Assembly (NCBI GenBank): GCA_051294905.1
Contig: CM119372.1
Location: 6,324,001-6,388,000, forward strand
DNA: 64,000 nt
Source of the DNA: Botryllus schlosseri
Taxonomy: Eukaryota
Direction of reading: 5' to 3'
Each line of letters starts with the position of its first letter. The stretch's first letter is position 1. Below, one piece after another: positions 55,556-63,942 of this stretch. A program made the translations under genes and the position numbers. The notes beneath the pieces are model-generated. The model searched no databases. It saw nothing but the letters and a program-made list of their open reading frames with translations, and had not been told where the DNA came from.

Positions 55556-56484
55556 CAGTGTTGGGATCAAGTCTCTACCTTCAAGTCACGGGTCATCTCG
55601 ACTCATTGCACATTTTGACTCGAGTCAAGTCAGTCGTTCTTTGATGGTGACTCGAGTCAAGTAAAAATTCAAGTCAAGTTGTCTTTCCGAAGTACGAGGC
55701 ATGATTAAGACATTGCATTTTGCTAGCTCATTGAAATAGAGATTGCGTCGCCATTTATTTTATATCGAGAAATTAATATAGACCTTAACATGCAAAAAGG
55801 CGTTGTATAGCTGACGCATACGTAGAAATGCTAAGCTACGTAAGTAACTGCTGTATATCCTGTCTCTAATTATCCGCAAAAATGAAGAATATAATACGAA
55901 ACCGCATATAGTTGAATCGAATTGATACGATGCACTACCCAACTACATATCCATGGGATACGATTTAAGCCTGCGCCAAAGATTGACGAATGATATAAAC
56001 ATACAAATATATTAGAATTCAATTTAAATCACACAAGAGGTTTGGTTAAGGTGAGCACCGAGCATCAATGACCACTGACCAGTATATAGAACAGATGTAG
56101 ATAGGCTACTTTGCTATTATATTACTTTCCTGCCAGTTCCCAGCAACGTACGTTGCAAGCTCCGATCACTTAATTTTCGGTCAATTTATCTGTGACACGG
56201 CAATGGAGATTCAGTAAAACGTAAAATCGTTGAATGAATTTAATTGGTCGCTCACACAGTTCACTCCAACGCATCGAGTACTATCCGAACATATGGAAGA
56301 TACAGCGACCTAGTCGACACCGATAACTTGATGACTTGAAATTGACTCGTAAATTTTGCCTCGGGTCACGAGTCAATCCACATTTCTGGAAGGACGAGTC
56401 AAGTCAAATCAAGTCATTTTTGAAAAGTGACTCGAGTCAAGTCAAGTCATTCGAAAGAATGTGACCCGAATCATCTCAACACTG
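55556..56484. mobile_element. hAT-type MITE with GACTCGAGTCAAGTC subrepeats
   Basis: TIR cagtgttgggat / atctcaacactg; TSD gtttatga / gtttataa. Confidence 0.82.
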
Positions 56485-56673
56485 GTTTATAATGAGAGTG
56501 AGAATAGAAAGCACAGCTGTGCTCGGTATCAAGGGTACCTAGCTTTTTTTTGAAATTATAATCAACCTGAAACGATCTTGCAACCCAAATAACACCGACT
56601 ATAATTCAATCATGTTATACAGTATTGTATATGGAGGTCTTTTACAAATAGACTTTTAAAATTGTTGTTGAAT

Positions 56674-57086
56674 TCATACGAAATTCATTAAATTTTTTTC
56701 AACATCTTCCCAGTTACATGTTTTCATATCTTTTTTAGCTGGCGGAAGGTTATGATCAAACACAGAAAAGATTCCACCGGTGTGAATATACAGAATTCTC
56801 TTCCCTTTAAATCGATGCCGATTGTGTATGAATTCATCCCTGAGTGCCTTGACAGCGCGCCCTCCATACGTTGGATCACACAATACGCCGGTCGAGCTGG
56901 CAATCTCATTGCAAAGGCGCAATGTATCTTCCAACGAGTCGGTGCACTGGTAACCATCAATTATATCGACGACGTCTCTGGATTTGACGTGAGTCAACCC
57001 GACATCACGGAGTATGTCGTCAATGATGTCATAGAAAAACTTGTCATCTTTTCGCATTGCCACTCCGTGGATTTTGACTTTGCTGT
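56674..57086 (-). CDS. dcyD-like: dcyD-like exon 2
   Basis: 201-aa ORF 56674-57279; homology begins at SKVKIHGV right after the ctacag acceptor. Confidence 0.9.
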
Positions 57087-60000
57087 CTGTAGAAAAGAGA
57101 GATTTGAAGTGGGCTTGAAGTGACGTAATTTGTACAATGAGGTGCCACAAATGAAATGCCGCGGAAATGCCCCGTTCACTTGGCACGGGTAACAGTATCA
57201 AGCAAAAGATGATTCCGTGCATAGTGATAATTCGGAATAACGGGAAGGCGAAACTTATCAAATAGTTTCTATCAGTCATGTCAATGATGAAAACGAAGGA
57301 GGGGTTTCGGTTGATTTTTTCAAGTTATAAAATAAATTTCGTCAAAACTATTTATTTATTAAGACAATAAATGTATAGTTAGTAATAATTAGGGACCGTC
57401 CAATTAATGTCCATTCATCTTAATGTAGAGGTGCTATCGGAAATGGGGTCGATTGGGTTATTGGGTTATACTTTCGGGAGGGCCCCTCGGTAGCGGCTCT
57501 TTAATTACTGGAGAATTATATCACGGACAAAGATATTGAAATATTAATAGACGCATAGACGTGGCCAGAATCAAATTGTACTCCATTGTACTCAATCATG
57601 TCCATTGTGACACAGGGTAAATTGATGGCGTCACAATGCCAAGTCAACAAATTTGGAGACGACATTCGCCCATCGTACGAATTCCTAAAAGGATCTGATT
57701 TGTGTCAGCACAAACGTTTATAAACGGGTCGCCATGAATAGGAATGTCAAGACTATACAATATACTAGTCTGTTCATTTATAATTTAGATTGACAGACCT
57801 TACATTTTCACATCCCTTATCAGCTAAATGACTAACATATTGAAGTCAGCTTTCACATGACATGTTACTCTTCATTTTCAAAAATTGCACCAGAATGATG
57901 AATGTTATGCATGATTGGTTTTGAAAATTATTGGGTGCGTAACCTGGTTTTAATCCATGACCACAATTGTGGGATGATTGTACTCAATTCAGCATCGAGA
58001 GCCTCTTTTATTCTGTGTATAGACGGTATAAATTGATCTTGAAAACATAGCTACGCTGTTTTATAGCCGTTATTGTCGCATGCAATATCAATGTTACTGA
58101 AAGGTTCTGGTTCGTGTGAACACGAACCTTTTTGAAAGGTTCTATGCAGGGCCGTAACAGCACCTCGTCAGCCCCCCATCCCCCCACCCAAAAAAACGTT
58201 GGTCTATGGGCCCCCATAGGATGATAAACCGAACTTATTGGGCCCCTCAGACCCCCCTTCGTTATCAGCTGTTTACCGCTGCTTAAGCATTGTCTTAACC
58301 GTCGGTATAGTGGATCAGCTATTCCCGTCTAGACGCGCGAAGCGCGAAAAAAATCAAAATTCATGATTGAATCGGTCAATATGTTCGGGAATTGACTAGA
58401 TATTGTTATCAATTTTTATACTCTCTCTGCCCACGTAATCAGATTTACCGGTAGAGCTGAGTGAGGTGTGTTTGAAAAGGTAGGACACGCAATAATGATT
58501 AAACATCTTCGGGCGTATACCCGTTCGCAGGAACGAAACAGCACTTGGCCAGGTCCCCCAATAAAACTTGGGTCTTGAACTTTCATAGAGTGATAAACCG
58601 ACCCCTCCCCCCCCCCCCCCATCACGCTGTTCGCTTTAGTTACGAAATGAGTGCCACAGTTTACGCAAAAATTTTCGATAATTCATGATAAAACCGGTCA
58701 ATAATATCGGGAATTGCATATATATTGCTATCAATTTCTTGTCCTCTCTGCTCACGTTATCAGATTTACCGGTAGAGCTGAATGAGGTGGCTTGGAAACT
58801 GTAGGGCCCGTAAATAATATTCAAACATATTCAGGTGGGCGGACCCGTTGGTATGACTTCGTTTCATGATGTCATTTCGTTATCTCCTGTCCGTTATATC
58901 AAAAAATACATAATCGCCCAAACGTACTAAACTAACGACGCACACGATTTCAAATTGGTATTTCTTCACTGGCATATAATTTTTCCCTGCGGAATGGTAT
59001 TTGTCTTCTGAGGTTCAGATTGCCAAGACAGGAACATTCGGCGCCAGTCATTTAGGCACCTAAGGACAATTAAACCTATATGTATTTTGCATATATAACG
59101 AAGTTTTCGGTCAGCGTAAGGGCAGTCCTTTTTGGCCCAGGTTTTCTCGTTACATATCGTTCTGGCACACTTCTTGGAGTCGCATGTTACATGTCCTAGA
59201 ACCTTATATGTCTCGCCGATATGTCCATTTCGATAAATCTTGCGTATTTTGTCTTGGGAAAGAGTACCAAATAATTAAGAAACTTGGCAACTTGAAATCG
59301 CGCGCAGCGTGAAAATTTTTGAAAAAGTTGCATAAGTTTTTGAAAAATACTCTATAATTTATGCTAATTCGCGAAATAATTTTGGGCCCTCTTCGAGCTC
59401 GCCCCCCCCCCCAATTGGGGGGTTTGGGGTGAGGCAGTTACGGTCCTGGTTCTATGTCAGGGGCGGGCAACTTCTGCAGTCGGCGGGTCAGATATGGGTA
59501 AATGAAGTCATACTTGGCGGGCCGGATTACAGAATATACATATCAATCGCGTATTTATCCACCAAGCAAGGAAACAATTGTATTTAATGTAAACTTTAAT
59601 TTGCAAGCATAGAAACCAAAAACAGTATTTAATTAATTTATTAACAGGTGCTGTTTACGTCAATTGGACATCTGTGGTCAGTCAAAGTTGTCAACAAGTT
59701 CTATGAACTCTGGCTGCATGTCGTATGTAGCAACCCTTGGTAAAAACTGCACGTGAACATAAGTTATATAAAGCGCAGCATAGTCTCGTTAATGTTCATG
59801 GTCGAAAATGTATGTAGACCCGAACAGGGCAAGTGGTTTCATGTCCATTGTCCATCTTTCTCATGTTTCTCATTTCATATGTTGGCAAACTTGGATTCAT
59901 TCTGCGACGCATAAAATTTGTCAATACTTTCAGAATATAATTTCACTTTCAGGATAGAAACTCTCTGCGGGCCGGTCAAAATCCCTTGGCGGGCCGTCTG

Positions 60001-62000
60001 TTGCCCGTCCCTGTTCTGTGTGAACGCGAACTCGAATCTATGACGTCACGTGACGTCATATTTCTAATTTCATCCCTACATTTCCGTAAAGTGATATGTC
60101 AATGTACAATGTACATGATAACCAGCGACGACTCAGGCCATATTATTGCACTATAATAAAGTACACGCTGACTTTTTAAACGTCACCTTATCAACTGTAA
60201 CAATCAAATGCTATAATAATTCTACAAAATAAATATCTTCCGTCGCTTTGGCAACAATTTCGACATCCATCGGCTAGACCGGACATATGCATTCTTAAGA
60301 GTGAAATACCGATTTCTATACCTGCGTCAGATATTATCTGCAAAACAAGTTCTGCAGTAGCCAACACCCCAATCGGAAGGATTGGGCTTTATGATACAAT
60401 AAGGTTATCAAATCAAGATAGATCCCATACGCATGATAGATTTTTTACCATTAGATATCTATGCATTGGTTATGTAAATTTCGTTTATGTAAATAACTGT
60501 TTGGTCGACTAAGCACAATTCGCTGACTTACATGTAGTGCGTGTTGGTTCTTGTGTTATTGCGGCCAAAGCTCACAGCAGAGAGTCACTAAAGATGTACA
60601 AACGGAAGGCAGAATATTCTGAGCAAACTTTCGAGCAGATAATTTTTGAAATTTGCAAGGTAAATGGTAGTTTAGTGCTGAATTTCTTTTCATGCTGCAA
60701 GCGCCATGCGGAGAGTGGGCCAACGTTGACGAAATGTAAGGAATTTGAACCAAAGACGCTCTAATGACGTGAAAAATTGTAATACGTGAAACAATTTCAT
60801 AGTGCAGAAGATACCAAGGTTCGTTTGTGGACGTGAACCTCCAAATTTCATAGGTTCACATACAGCAAGCATTTTTCACCCGCAGAAAATATATGTATTT
60901 TGGAAAGGATTGCTGGATGGTTCTTATGAAGACCTGACCATCCAAGCACTCGAGCACTTGACGTTCTTGTAGAAAACCCAACACTCATTTGGCCGAAAAG
61001 GGTTTTAATGCACTATAGTTGAAATCAAAACGAAAGAAAAGAGTTGTCTTTTTAATGAGACACTTGATGGGCCCAACCGGTAGCCTATTCTTGTTCCACA
61101 TCTGAAGAAAATCTTCATCATATTTTTGTATAACAATTTTCGGTTGGTTTGTTCCGATGAATTTTTTTGCGAGTAGAGTTTATATTCATTGTTCAATCAT
61201 AATTTGAACCTTCATTCTTGTGATTGTGTGGTGTATTTTATGGGCAACACAAATAATCTAGAAGTGTTTCACGATAGTAAAATAGTTTTAAAAATATTCG
61301 AGTAACCTGTCAATTGGTTTCCGACCGCTAGTCCTGCCAATGTTATTCCACTAGATGTTGCTACCACGATGTCATCAATCTCTTCCACAATACCTTGCTG
61401 TAACAACTCGTCCCAGACCCTCAGATATCCATGAATAGCTGTCGAGTGGAACATTCTTCCGTCAATAAAGCACGTCTTCCCAGTTTTAGCGTGAATTGCA
61501 TCCGCAACTATTGTAGTTTTCGGAAAGATTTTGGTTTCATAGTCATAGTTTTCAGGAAACAATATCATTTTTGCCGCACACATTTCCATTATTTTAAAAT
61601 TTCCGCGAGATGGCGTTTGACTAACAAGACTGCGAGGATTCTTTCGTAACAAAAGGTATGCGTCCATATTGAGCTGGGCAGCAATAAGTGCGATTGCCCT
61701 GCATTCGTTGGATTGCGCGTTGCCACACTTGATATATGAGCCGCAGCCGCGTTTCAGTGCTTCTGCGAATACAAATTCTAGTTTTCTGATCTTGTTCCCT
61801 CCTAAACATGATCCCGTCATGTCATCTCTCTTGATATACAAATCCAATCCCTGTGGCATGATCCTGGGTTGCCACCGATGGACCGGTGTCATAGTCATAG
61901 CAAGATTGATTTTGTGAGTGGGCTTCTTTTCAAGACATGTACTCCAAAATGGAGGAGTATATTCAGTAATTTTACCGTATGAGTTACCGAAGTCATGCAT
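56674..62000 (-). CDS. dcyD-like: D-cysteine desulfhydrase / ACC deaminase family PLP-dependent enzyme (divergent), 2 exons (62000-61307, 57086-56674), 368 aa
   Basis: Family motifs TPVHRW, LYIKRDDMTG, LGGNKIRKLEF (PLP lysine), QSN, DDIVVA, DPTY, ILYIHTGGIF. The phase-1 intron (ACAG|gttact ... ttttctacag|AC) gives 1107 nt = 369 codons including stop. Confidence 0.9.
57470..57920 (+). mobile_element. highly degraded CR1/L2-like reverse transcriptase remnant
   Basis: Fragments SGGPLGS (cf. GVPQGS), VNKFGDDI (cf. FADD) and VMH in the expected order, with stops and indels. Confidence 0.3.
58147..59448. mobile_element. non-autonomous hAT element (1302 bp) with internal tandem duplication
   Basis: TIR cagggccgtaac / gttacggtcctg; perfect TSD gttctatg. 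Confidence 0.88.
59458..60013. mobile_element. hAT (Buster/SPIN-like) deletion derivative
   Basis: TIR caggggcgggcaac / gttgcccgtccctg; TSD ttctatgt / ttctgtgt. Confidence 0.88.
59660..59928 (-). pseudogene. Buster/SPIN-type hAT transposase C-terminal remnant
   Basis: SIDKFYASQNESKFANI*...LALFGSTYI / FSTMNIN...RVATYDMQPEFIELV resembles the FGSTYxCEQxFSxMN...LRIAT end of Buster/SPIN transposases. Confidence 0.7.
61307..62000 (-). CDS. dcyD-like: dcyD-like exon 1
   Basis: 243-aa ORF 61269-62000; homology ends at LAVGNQLT; the donor gttact is weak but phase-compatible. Confidence 0.88.
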
Positions 62001-63440
62001 GGTTCGGTAGATAATCTGAAATAAAATCTATCATACTATGGGTTGCATTTAGAACAAACATGCTAAAACATGGCCCTTGCTTAAAACATGATTTCGTCGT
62101 TTATTTTCACCATTTTTAATCTTTCAATTTGTGAATTTGTTTATTGACTTGAGCATGAATCGACTAAGTCATATGACTCGAGACGAACATTTCTTTGTAT
62201 TTTCAAAGAATTGTTAATTTCCACGTTATTGGTATTTTGTCTATAATTATTTGTACATGAATATTAGGTTCAGAGAATGTTGAGAATGAGGAAAATCATC
62301 AAATCATGAATGCCTTGCATTCGATATTTCCCAAGCAGAGTTGCAAAGGAGTGGATTGAAGTTGACTTGAACTAGAAATTAAAAAGTGAAAGCAATGACT
62401 GTGACTGGGACTCGACCTGCCGCACCCCGACTTGGACTTGACTCGGTGATGAATCAAAAATGACTCAGCTTGATTTGAGTCAAAACTATATAAGTAAGAT
62501 TGATTTGTGACTCGGAACCTTGTGACTTGGTCACCAGGGCATGGTATGGTATGGAATGTGATATTCGTAATCAGCAACCCCGAAAACCCCAGAAACGACT
62601 CTCAGATGTTCTGCAAAACAATTTTTCTTTTTCATTTTGTTGACCCGTGTAATCATTCGAGCAAAGAGCATGAAATGATTCTCAAGTTCAACAAATTGAT
62701 ATAGATATTCAAATTCATGTAACTGCGACATTCTCATCGAGTCTACGATTTTATAACTCTTAGTAGTTTACGGGGTGGAAATAAGTAGTAGTATAGTATA
62801 GCGACACGTCTTCCTAATTGCCACGCCCATATGACGCACAATATGCCACATCAACATTCGAATTTCATATTAAAAGTGACCTTGGCTGGATTAGAAATAG
62901 GGATGCATAGTGTAATTCTCAGGACCATCACCATTAGACTATCGCGCAGACTTGATGTACTGAACTGTTTTGAGAATATCAATACCGATTCTTCCTAAAA
63001 TCCCGCGACTTGATAATAATAGTGCTTAAGAGAAATAAGGACGTTAAAATTCTGCGTAAATTTCGATAACTATGTATGATTTTTTGTGTATGTAAGACTA
63101 TCTATGTTCGCGAAGACTTTAGCGGCGATTGTATAAATGTATCACTAATTAATTACTCAAAATATCATTTTGAGTGTTTAAATTCCACGAATGCAACTTG
63201 ATAACGCACACTCATATCACACGCAATGCCACGTCTACGTTTACATCACGCTAGTGAAGGTCTGACACTTGTATACGTGCCACGAATATCGCTGATTGCG
63301 ATTCTAAGAATTGAAGTCGCGCTCTAAGAAAAATGCCACTTAGATAGTAAGAATTAGAATGTCTAATTTTCACCTGAATCAATTTGCACTCTGAAAACTT
63401 CCCATTTCTGTCACAATTATTGCGGTATGCACTTCAGATA

Positions 63441-63942
63441 GCGAATAAGGCAGGCATCGCATGAACAGCTGACGACGCAGGCATTCAAGGTGAGATCCAG
63501 TTACGTAGCTTTTTCGTATTGATTTGGGGTATCTTTATTTTGTACATGTAAGCTAATGAAAAGCTAATGAAGCTAATTAAACAAGGAAGCTAATGAAAAG
63601 CTAATTAAGCTAATGAAAAGCTAATGAAGCTAATGAAAAGCTAATGACGCTAATGAAAAGCTAATGAAGCTAATGAAACAAGCTAATGAAAAAAGGAAGC
63701 TAATGAAAAGCTAATGAAGCTAATCAAAGGCTAATGAAGCTAATGAAACAAGCTAATCAAAAGCTGATGAAGCTAATGAAACGAGCTAATGAAAAAATGA
63801 ATCTAATGAAAAAGTAATAAAAATCTCATGAAGCTAATGAAGCTAATGAAACGAGCTAATGAAAAACTAATAAAAAACCTCTCGAAGCTAATGAAAAGCT
63901 AATGAAGCTAATGAAACAAGCTAATGAAAAAAGAAGCTAATG
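63441..63942 (+). mobile_element. TSD-flanked insertion with tandem-repeat tail (probable truncated non-LTR retroelement)
   Basis: 12-bp direct repeat gcacttcagata at 63429-63440 and 63943-63954. Confidence 0.55.
63550..63942 (+). repeat. minisatellite (AAGCTAATGA-type unit, ~33 copies)
   Basis: Direct count of ctaat-core units; forms the tail of an insertion bounded by gcacttcagata. Confidence 0.9.

Follow-up and report, generated by a model that had tools for sequence, protein, structure and literature searches.

Can a member of the D-cysteine desulfhydrase (DCyD) family have several of its nearly invariant active-site motifs replaced together and still be kept by selection in an animal? 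A 64,000-nucleotide stretch of the Botryllus schlosseri genome (GenBank assembly GCA_051294905.1, contig CM119372.1, positions 6,324,001 to 6,388,000 of the forward strand; hereafter the window) raises this question. A preliminary description made from the sequence had proposed that an intact 368-residue frame in the window encodes a DCyD-family enzyme with a rebuilt substrate pocket around a preserved pyridoxal 5'-phosphate (PLP) core. We show here that the gene is a real, expressed, selectively maintained and lineage-restricted paralogue of an animal D-cysteine-desulfhydrase-like gene, and we weigh what the changes in its product may mean.

An expressed and selectively maintained paralogue

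The frame is borne out as a two-exon gene on the minus strand, assembled from starting open reading frames (ORFs) at 61269-62000 and 56674-57279 (coordinates throughout are those of the window). Its 1107 nt of coding sequence give 368 amino acids with zero internal stops, and an in-frame TAG stands upstream of the ATG. The splice donor reads ACAG/GTTACT at 61307/61306 and the acceptor ends in TTTTCTACAG at 57087/57086. The parts of the gene are as follows.

62000-61307, minus strand: coding part of exon 1, with the ATG at 62000; residues 1-231 and the first base of codon 232; contains the PLP lysine, QSNE, the DGRMF loop and the TSSGIT phosphate loop
61306-57087, minus strand: intron of 4220 nt, GT..AG, phase 1
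57086-56674, minus strand: coding part of exon 2; remainder of codon 232 and residues 233-368, stop at 56676-56674; contains the DGYQCTDS loop, DPTYGGR and HTGG
56429-56673, minus strand: 3' untranslated region (UTR), of at least this extent, from the spliced X6 contig described below
62001-62033, minus strand: 33 nt upstream of the ATG, identical at 33/33 positions in the tandem paralogue described below (blastn), for which the alignable intron is 85-92% identical

A TTTCAG within 62001-62033 may serve as acceptor for a non-coding 5' exon.

Transcription follows this structure. A 1096-nt contig from public run X6 joins 56429-57086 to 61307-61740 and skips the 4220-nt intron exactly (CT..AC ends on the plus strand). 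About 41 of the 49 positions that separate the window copy from its tandem twin are of window type in this contig, as is the 3' UTR; this assigns the transcript to the window locus and bears out both the transcription and the predicted splicing of the gene. In runs X5 and X7 the introns are covered too, so that these runs behave like DNA. The X6 allele carries an in-frame one-codon Cys insertion ('GCA behind 56943') in the shortened loop considered below, which then reads GYQC-C-TDS. Within exon 1 of the same contig, a short tract at 61515-61532 has six paralogue-type bases, which could mean that the twins have exchanged sequence by gene conversion or that alleles differ there. The variants found in contigs of X5, X6 and X7 (13 synonymous, 11 non-synonymous) were not used as evidence, because many match the paralogue base and are thus mosaic, through gene conversion or chimeric contigs.

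Three copies of the gene are present in the genome that we searched (495 Mb, 219 contigs): the window copy (A), a tandem copy 32 kb past the window's high end (B; C2:6414121-6418332, loci L002 and L006) and a canonical copy on contig C6 (C). Copy B also encodes 368 amino acids and has the exon structure of A; the two proteins are 92.7% identical, with 27 amino-acid differences, and the motifs of B are divergent too (DGKMF, TSSGVT). Copy C carries QSNH, PVGGS, GSGGT, GYG, DPVYTGK and HTGG, matches A in intron position and phase, and is 42% identical to it. A possible difference in N-terminal targeting, raised by a copy C ORF that reaches 27 codons further upstream, was dropped, as the true start of C is not established.

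A search for other proteins of the divergent type, made with exon 1 against 90% clusters and 50% representatives and with exon 2 as well, returned only two, both in Logan assemblies of other samples: P0001, 57% identical to A, and P0002, 61% identical. On the contig of P0002 (L004), exon 2 lies beyond a 462-nt intron of matching position and phase; we refer to this gene as copy D. A further candidate from the exon-2 search, P0268, was rejected as a clade member and is canonical in type. QSNE, TSSG[IV]T (TSSGVT in D and P0001) and the absence of G-G-S are common to all of A, B, D and P0001, and DPxYGG to the three for which exon 2 is available (A, B and D, the last with DPQYGGK). The sample of P0001 also has the canonical-type proteins P0123 and P0124; it holds both types, and the duplication is therefore older than the split of these species. 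In Logan sample SRR25569784, from which the contigs of P0123 and P0124 come, there are at least two canonical-type copies, and on one contig a C-terminal exon of the Pfam family PALP (PF00291) lies upstream of P0124, an arrangement that points to a tandem duplication of the canonical gene in that organism.

In a maximum-likelihood tree, A, B, D and P0001 group together as a single clade (100/100), the stem of which measures 0.70 substitutions per site. This divergent clade is nested within animal sequences, adjoining the species' own canonical copy (84/89) and Styela clava. Bacterial contamination and horizontal transfer were rejected on account of the tree and the shared spliceosomal intron. 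A joint clade with the amphioxus protein XP_035671681 (P0128), a group named after the tree was seen, is not rejected (approximately unbiased test, p-AU 0.39).

Motif degradation has also occurred independently in several other DCyD-like paralogues of animals, namely in members of a group, P0005 to P0011, and in the separate proteins P0121, P0128 (Branchiostoma) and P0141. Tyr287 (DCyD numbering) is lost in P0005, P0008, P0009 and P0011, and in P0141, from Apostichopus, Asn50 is replaced by His and the Gly loops are lost. With aberrant paralogues in several animal lineages, post-duplication divergence of this gene family is thus recurrent in animals, and the present case is less surprising.

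A comparison of A with B gives 30 non-synonymous differences over 870 sites and 28 synonymous differences over 234 sites (pN 0.034, pS 0.12), that is, a ratio of non-synonymous to synonymous change (omega) of 0.28-0.33 (Fisher p 2.8e-6). The alignable intron identity of this pair is consistent with the synonymous divergence (dS). For A and D, dS is saturated, so that only the non-synonymous divergence (dN, 0.31-0.35) and the frames, which are intact, are usable. Over exon 1 in the same pair of organisms, A and P0001 are 56.7% identical vs 61.3% for canonical C and P0124; the divergent copy therefore now evolves at about the canonical rate after an initial burst. Judged from these comparisons, the pattern is that of a duplicate under new, stable constraint, not of decay. 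The preliminary description had allowed that the substitutions might be shared by most metazoans, or that the gene might be unexpressed and evolving neutrally. Neither is the case: Capitella, sea urchin, Styela, Haliotis, Rhopilema and the species' own copy C keep QSNH, GGS, GSGGT, GYG and DPVYTGK, and the spliced RNA in X6 is accompanied by an A-B omega of about 0.3.

The gene also stands among repeats. The intron interior at about 58290-59483 and the segment 56300-56498 just past the 3' UTR consist of high-copy repeats, with summed contig depth in the thousands in three runs; these repeats are probably transposon-derived, and run X7 has many rearranged joints. A minisatellite on AAGCTAATG occupies 63550-63942, about 1.5 kb upstream of the gene, with periods of 9, 20 and 103 and about 30 copies of the 9-mer. 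Near copy B, at 3186-3662 of L002, there is a long microsatellite-like array, one frame of which reads SSQVK repeats, and related words occur at 56336-56464 of the window, downstream of A.

Family membership and the residues of the active site

The predicted window protein is a member of the DCyD/ACC deaminase family of fold-type II PLP enzymes (ACC stands for 1-aminocyclopropane-1-carboxylate). Its exon 1 product matches Pfam PALP with 67.5 bits (E 1.7e-18; gathering cut-off 35), and the exon 2 product alone scores 22.7 bits and covers the C-terminal end of the profile. The closest solved structures are the Pyrococcus ACC deaminase (ACCD) homologue 1J0A (E 5e-21) and Salmonella DCyD (StDCyD) 4D8T (E 2.4e-18), and Pseudomonas ACC deaminase 1RQX is also among them. 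Fold-type II features are present in the sequence: Lys70, Thr334 and an S-S-G-I-T loop in which Gly218 and Thr220 are retained.

NCBIfam models were scanned with the two exon products separately, and scores are given as exon 1 + exon 2. The best match is the subfamily model TIGR01275, with 131.8 + 59.6 bits, under the cut-off of 289.4. The canonical Styela protein, which scores 270.3, is also slightly under this value, and the cut-off is thus strict for animals. Hallmarks of the TIGR01275 type, Asn69 before Lys70 and a carboxylate loop of Gln96-Ser97-Asn98, are found in the window protein. No NCBIfam equivalog model was approached: the models for D-cysteine desulfhydrase, ACC deaminase (TIGR01274; 70 and 23 bits vs a cut-off of 392), the D-cysteate sulfo-lyase CuyA (NF052482; 108.4 + 31.3 bits vs 450) and XcbE of coenzyme M synthesis (NF052537; 72.2 + 26.4 bits vs 450) are all far above the scores obtained.

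Every motif named in the preliminary description (GGNKIRK, QSNE, DGRMF, TSSGIT, DGYQCTDS, DPTYGGR and HTGG) is present. Their positions, and the DCyD positions to which they correspond (roles per PMC3344862), are as follows.

residues 67-73: GGNKIRK, in which Lys70 is Lys51 of DCyD
61791-61796, minus strand: codons of Asn69-Lys70 (Asn50-Lys51 of DCyD), the Schiff-base lysine and O3' ligand
61704-61715, minus strand: QSNE (residues 96-99), substrate-carboxylate loop, His80 to Glu
61449-61463, minus strand: DGRMF (residues 180-184), standing where DCyD has P-x-G-G-S (157-161)
61341-61358, minus strand: TSSGIT (residues 215-220), PLP-phosphate loop, Gly194 to Ser and Gly197 to Ile
56935-56958, minus strand: DGYQCTDS (residues 275-282), loop shortened relative to the canonical G-x-G-Y-G (Tyr261)
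56857-56877, minus strand: DPTYGGR (residues 302-308), catalytic and stacking Tyr retained, Thr288 to Gly and Lys290 to Arg
56773-56784, minus strand: HTGG (residues 333-336), pyridine-nitrogen-binding Thr retained (Leu in ACC deaminases)

We aligned the window protein with E. coli DcyD (NC_000913.3; numbering as StDCyD) and 35 other bacterial, protist, plant and animal homologues. Retained, in DCyD numbering, are Asn50-Lys51, Gln77-Ser78-Asn79, Thr198, Asp284-Pro285, Tyr287 and His314-Thr315-Gly-Gly, and the StDCyD catalytic set of Lys51, Tyr287, Ser78, Gln77 and Thr315 is complete. Altered are His80 (to Glu), Pro157-x-Gly-Gly-Ser (to Asp-Gly-Arg-Met-Phe), Gly194 (to Ser), Gly197 (to Ile), Thr288 (to Gly) and Lys290 (to Arg), and the G-x-G-Y-G segment with Tyr261 is missing. 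The window protein thus departs from StDCyD at His80 (Glu99), Tyr261 (deleted, depending on the alignment), Thr288 (Gly306), and Gly194 and Gly197 (Ser216 and Ile219). The replaced residues are close to invariant among 264 family members in a 269-sequence alignment: His80 97%, Gly159 98%, Ser161 92%, Gly194 90%, Gly197 94%, Lys290 94% and Thr/Ser288 92%. Across the family-wide conserved columns, 42 of 58 are kept, including those of Asn50, Lys51, Gln77, Ser78, Asn79, Ser195, Gly196, Thr198, Asp284, Pro285, Tyr287, His314, Thr315, Gly316 and Gly317.

The GYG loop, which the preliminary description had called deleted, is a case in which the alignment method matters. L-INS-i keeps the first GY and deletes the Tyr261 segment, whereas MAFFT --auto puts the retained Tyr on column 261. 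The local context, IIDGYQ vs IIEGYK in the species' own canonical copy, indicates that it is the first Tyr, which is non-catalytic, that has been retained, so that the deletion is upheld by L-INS-i and by context and contradicted by the automatic alignment.

The divergent clade has a set of fixed new states (Glu80, Ser194, Val/Ile197, Gly288, Asp157, Ile84 and Lys/Arg72), and its members vary at positions 159-162 and in the 261 loop. Work on StDCyD allows these positions to be sorted by function (PMC3344862). There, Lys51 makes the Schiff base, Asn50 contacts the ring, Thr315 binds the pyridine nitrogen, and Tyr287, stacked on the ring, takes up the alpha proton, the Y287F mutant being dead (PMC3344862). 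Use of D-Cys requires Ser78 and Gln77, and the phosphate is held by the main-chain NH of residues 194-198 (PMC3344862). Tyr261 tunes Tyr287, with Y261F retaining 15-25% of activity (70% on D-Ser), and H80Q retains 50-75% (PMC3344862); loss of His80 or Tyr261 alone therefore need not kill catalysis. Going by these assignments, all of the predicted indispensable residues are retained in every clade member, and those lost are predicted modulators. In the active PLP enzyme ACC deaminase of Pseudomonas, SVTGST aligns with TSSGIT and places Val and Ser at 194 and 197. Residues other than Gly at these two positions are thus compatible with PLP in the family, and binding of PLP by the window protein is plausible.

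A shifted specificity and its rivals

We read this pattern as a retained cofactor core with a pocket that appears to have been loosened and re-specified, and we would give about even chances to the proposal that the gene encodes a neofunctionalised PLP enzyme with shifted specificity. The history of the gene is clear: the canonical gene was duplicated, with intron position and phase shared between the products; a burst of change on the stem (about 0.7 substitutions per site) was followed by purifying selection in at least three species; and a second, tandem duplication of the divergent gene took place in this genome. As for the protein, PLP would still be bound through Lys70, with Asn69, Thr220, Thr334 and Tyr305 in their usual roles, and the alpha proton of an amino-acid substrate would probably still be removed, so that the substrate is deaminated or undergoes elimination. 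What would be altered is the pocket responsible for side-chain selection, with Glu99 for His80, bulky residues for G-G-S, a shortened Tyr261 loop and Gly for Thr288, and with such a pocket the preferred substrate would probably not be D-cysteine handled in the canonical manner.

The activities known in the DCyD/ACCD family are few, namely those of D-cysteine desulfhydrase (EC 4.4.1.15), ACC deaminase (EC 3.5.99.7), D-cysteate sulfo-lyase and a coenzyme M step. A bolder proposal, towards which we are tentative and somewhat sceptical, is that the divergent clade, maybe with amphioxus XP_035671681 as a distant member, constitutes an unrecognised subfamily with its own catalytic specificity. Its members would be PLP lyases or deaminases in which the acidic side chain at position 80, together with a wider pocket, selects a substrate other than D-cysteine, ACC or D-cysteate.

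Several observations weigh against a shift in specificity. The preliminary description had spoken of coordinated pocket changes around a preserved cofactor core; the core is retained and pocket states have changed, but changed conserved columns number 5 of 24 inside active-site segments and 11 of 34 outside them (a hand count, with segments per PMC3344862), so that the pocket is not preferentially hit and the protein is divergent as a whole. Clade members differ from one another in the former G-G-S segment (R/K/T, M/L/T, F/L), as if constraint there had been relaxed rather than redirected, and an omega of 0.3 amounts to moderate constraint only. The beta-branched residue at 197 is unique to the divergent clade, with none among 233 other family members examined. 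At position 288, where the clade carries Gly, the T288E mutation of StDCyD abolishes PLP binding (PMC3344862). The evidence for expression is a single spliced contig with a depth of about 9, and bulk RNA-seq run X23 (6% read) gave almost no exon reads; the expression level of the window gene looks low.

The rival that survives best is a pseudoenzyme, in which selection would maintain the fold for a task other than catalysis (for example binding, regulation or forming heterodimers with the canonical enzyme) after PLP binding or turnover was lost. It would account for the replacement of two phosphate-loop glycines (Gly194Ser, Gly197Ile/Val), the loss of the nearly invariant G-G-S and Tyr261 elements and NCBIfam scores far under every cut-off, and it has parallels in the degraded-motif paralogues of other animal lineages, of which P0008 and P0009 are without Tyr287. 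However, a protein without its cofactor has little reason to keep the Lys, Asn50, Ser78, Asn79, Thr198, Tyr287 and Thr315, all of which are retained clade-wide despite 57-59% identity and saturated dS, and ACC deaminase tolerates residues other than Gly at 194 and 197. We regard a pseudoenzyme as unlikely on this evidence.

We think it more unlikely still that the protein is an ordinary D-cysteine desulfhydrase, whose substitutions reflect drift tolerated in a lineage that evolves fast and leave the activity essentially as it was. The catalytic Lys, Tyr, Ser and Gln are retained, the H80Q and Y261F mutants of StDCyD are partly active, and the lineage is fast in general, its canonical copies being 59-61% identical between two species. 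Against this, both this genome and the related sample retain a canonical copy alongside the divergent one, the stem branch is long, and the replaced residues are 90-98% invariant in bacteria, plants, protists and animals, with the new states fixed in the clade. The tandem arrangement, the repeat-rich surroundings and the low RNA depth might suggest a duplicate in decay (a young pseudogene), or else an artefact of assembly, contamination or bacterial transfer. Such a reading is very improbable given intact frames in four copies from three sources, an omega of 0.3 (p 3e-6), a spliced transcript, a spliceosomal intron shared with the canonical animal gene and a position nested in animal sequences.

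Many marine invertebrates carry a DCyD/ACCD-family gene, and the uncharacterised animal family as a whole is a reasonable target for study. Botryllus offers a natural experiment, as one genome contains the canonical copy together with a long-maintained one whose pocket is rebuilt, the key positions being 80, 158-161, 194/197, the 261 loop and 288. Comparing the two side by side could reveal the role of the animal enzymes and whether the reaction or substrate range of the family is wider than known. Should the divergent clade be a subfamily with its own specificity, it would amount to a new route, in animals, for the metabolism of D-amino acids or sulfur amino acids; an inactive protein would instead provide a clear instance of a PLP pseudoenzyme preserved by selection.

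Comparison with known systems

StDCyD (4D8T) and E. coli DcyD (b1919) belong to the same fold-type II PLP family as the window protein and share with it Asn-Lys at 50-51, Gln77-Ser78-Asn79, Thr198, Asp284-Pro285, Tyr287 and His314-Thr315-Gly-Gly. The window protein is about 30% identical to them and differs in having Glu for His80, G-R-M-F for V-G-G-S (158-161), Ser for Gly194, Ile for Gly197, a shortened Tyr261 loop, Gly for Thr288 and Arg for Lys290. Pyrococcus horikoshii PhAHP (1J0A), the best match among solved structures, is like the window protein in being neither an ACC deaminase nor a typical DCyD; unlike it, PhAHP retains His83, G-G-A-S and GSGGT.

ACC deaminases (Pseudomonas 1RQX/1TYZ; Hansenula 1F2D) resemble the window protein in lacking His at position 80, where they have Gln and it has Glu, and in carrying non-glycine residues at 194 and 197 of the phosphate loop (SVTGST vs TSSGIT). 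They differ at two diagnostic positions, Glu295 and Leu322, which are Gly306 and Thr334 in the window protein; ACC deaminase alignments read 'dpvyegk' and 'hlgg' there. The view already taken in the preliminary description, that this is not an ACC deaminase, is thus confirmed.

No characterised animal DCyD-like enzyme was found in the searchable literature, and the animal proteins compared here are predicted ones. Those annotated as 'bifunctional D-cysteine desulfhydrase/ACC deaminase, mitochondrial-like' (Styela clava XP_039256003, Capitella, sea urchin, Haliotis), together with the species' own copy C, are 39-46% identical to the window protein, fall in the same clade and represent the evolutionary source of the window gene; unlike it, they have every canonical motif. 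The Branchiostoma floridae protein XP_035671681 (P0128; 'putative D-cysteine desulfhydrase 1, mitochondrial') also lacks His80 (Gln) and G-G-S, and it has GYQ, Y-G-[GA]-R-A-V and NRHRFKG..LYIHTGGIFSV in common with the window protein, with 43% identity over exon 2. It is 34% identical over exon 1, however, has the phosphate loop SAGGAM and falls outside the divergent clade in the free tree. The resemblance of the amphioxus protein to the divergent clade may be convergent.

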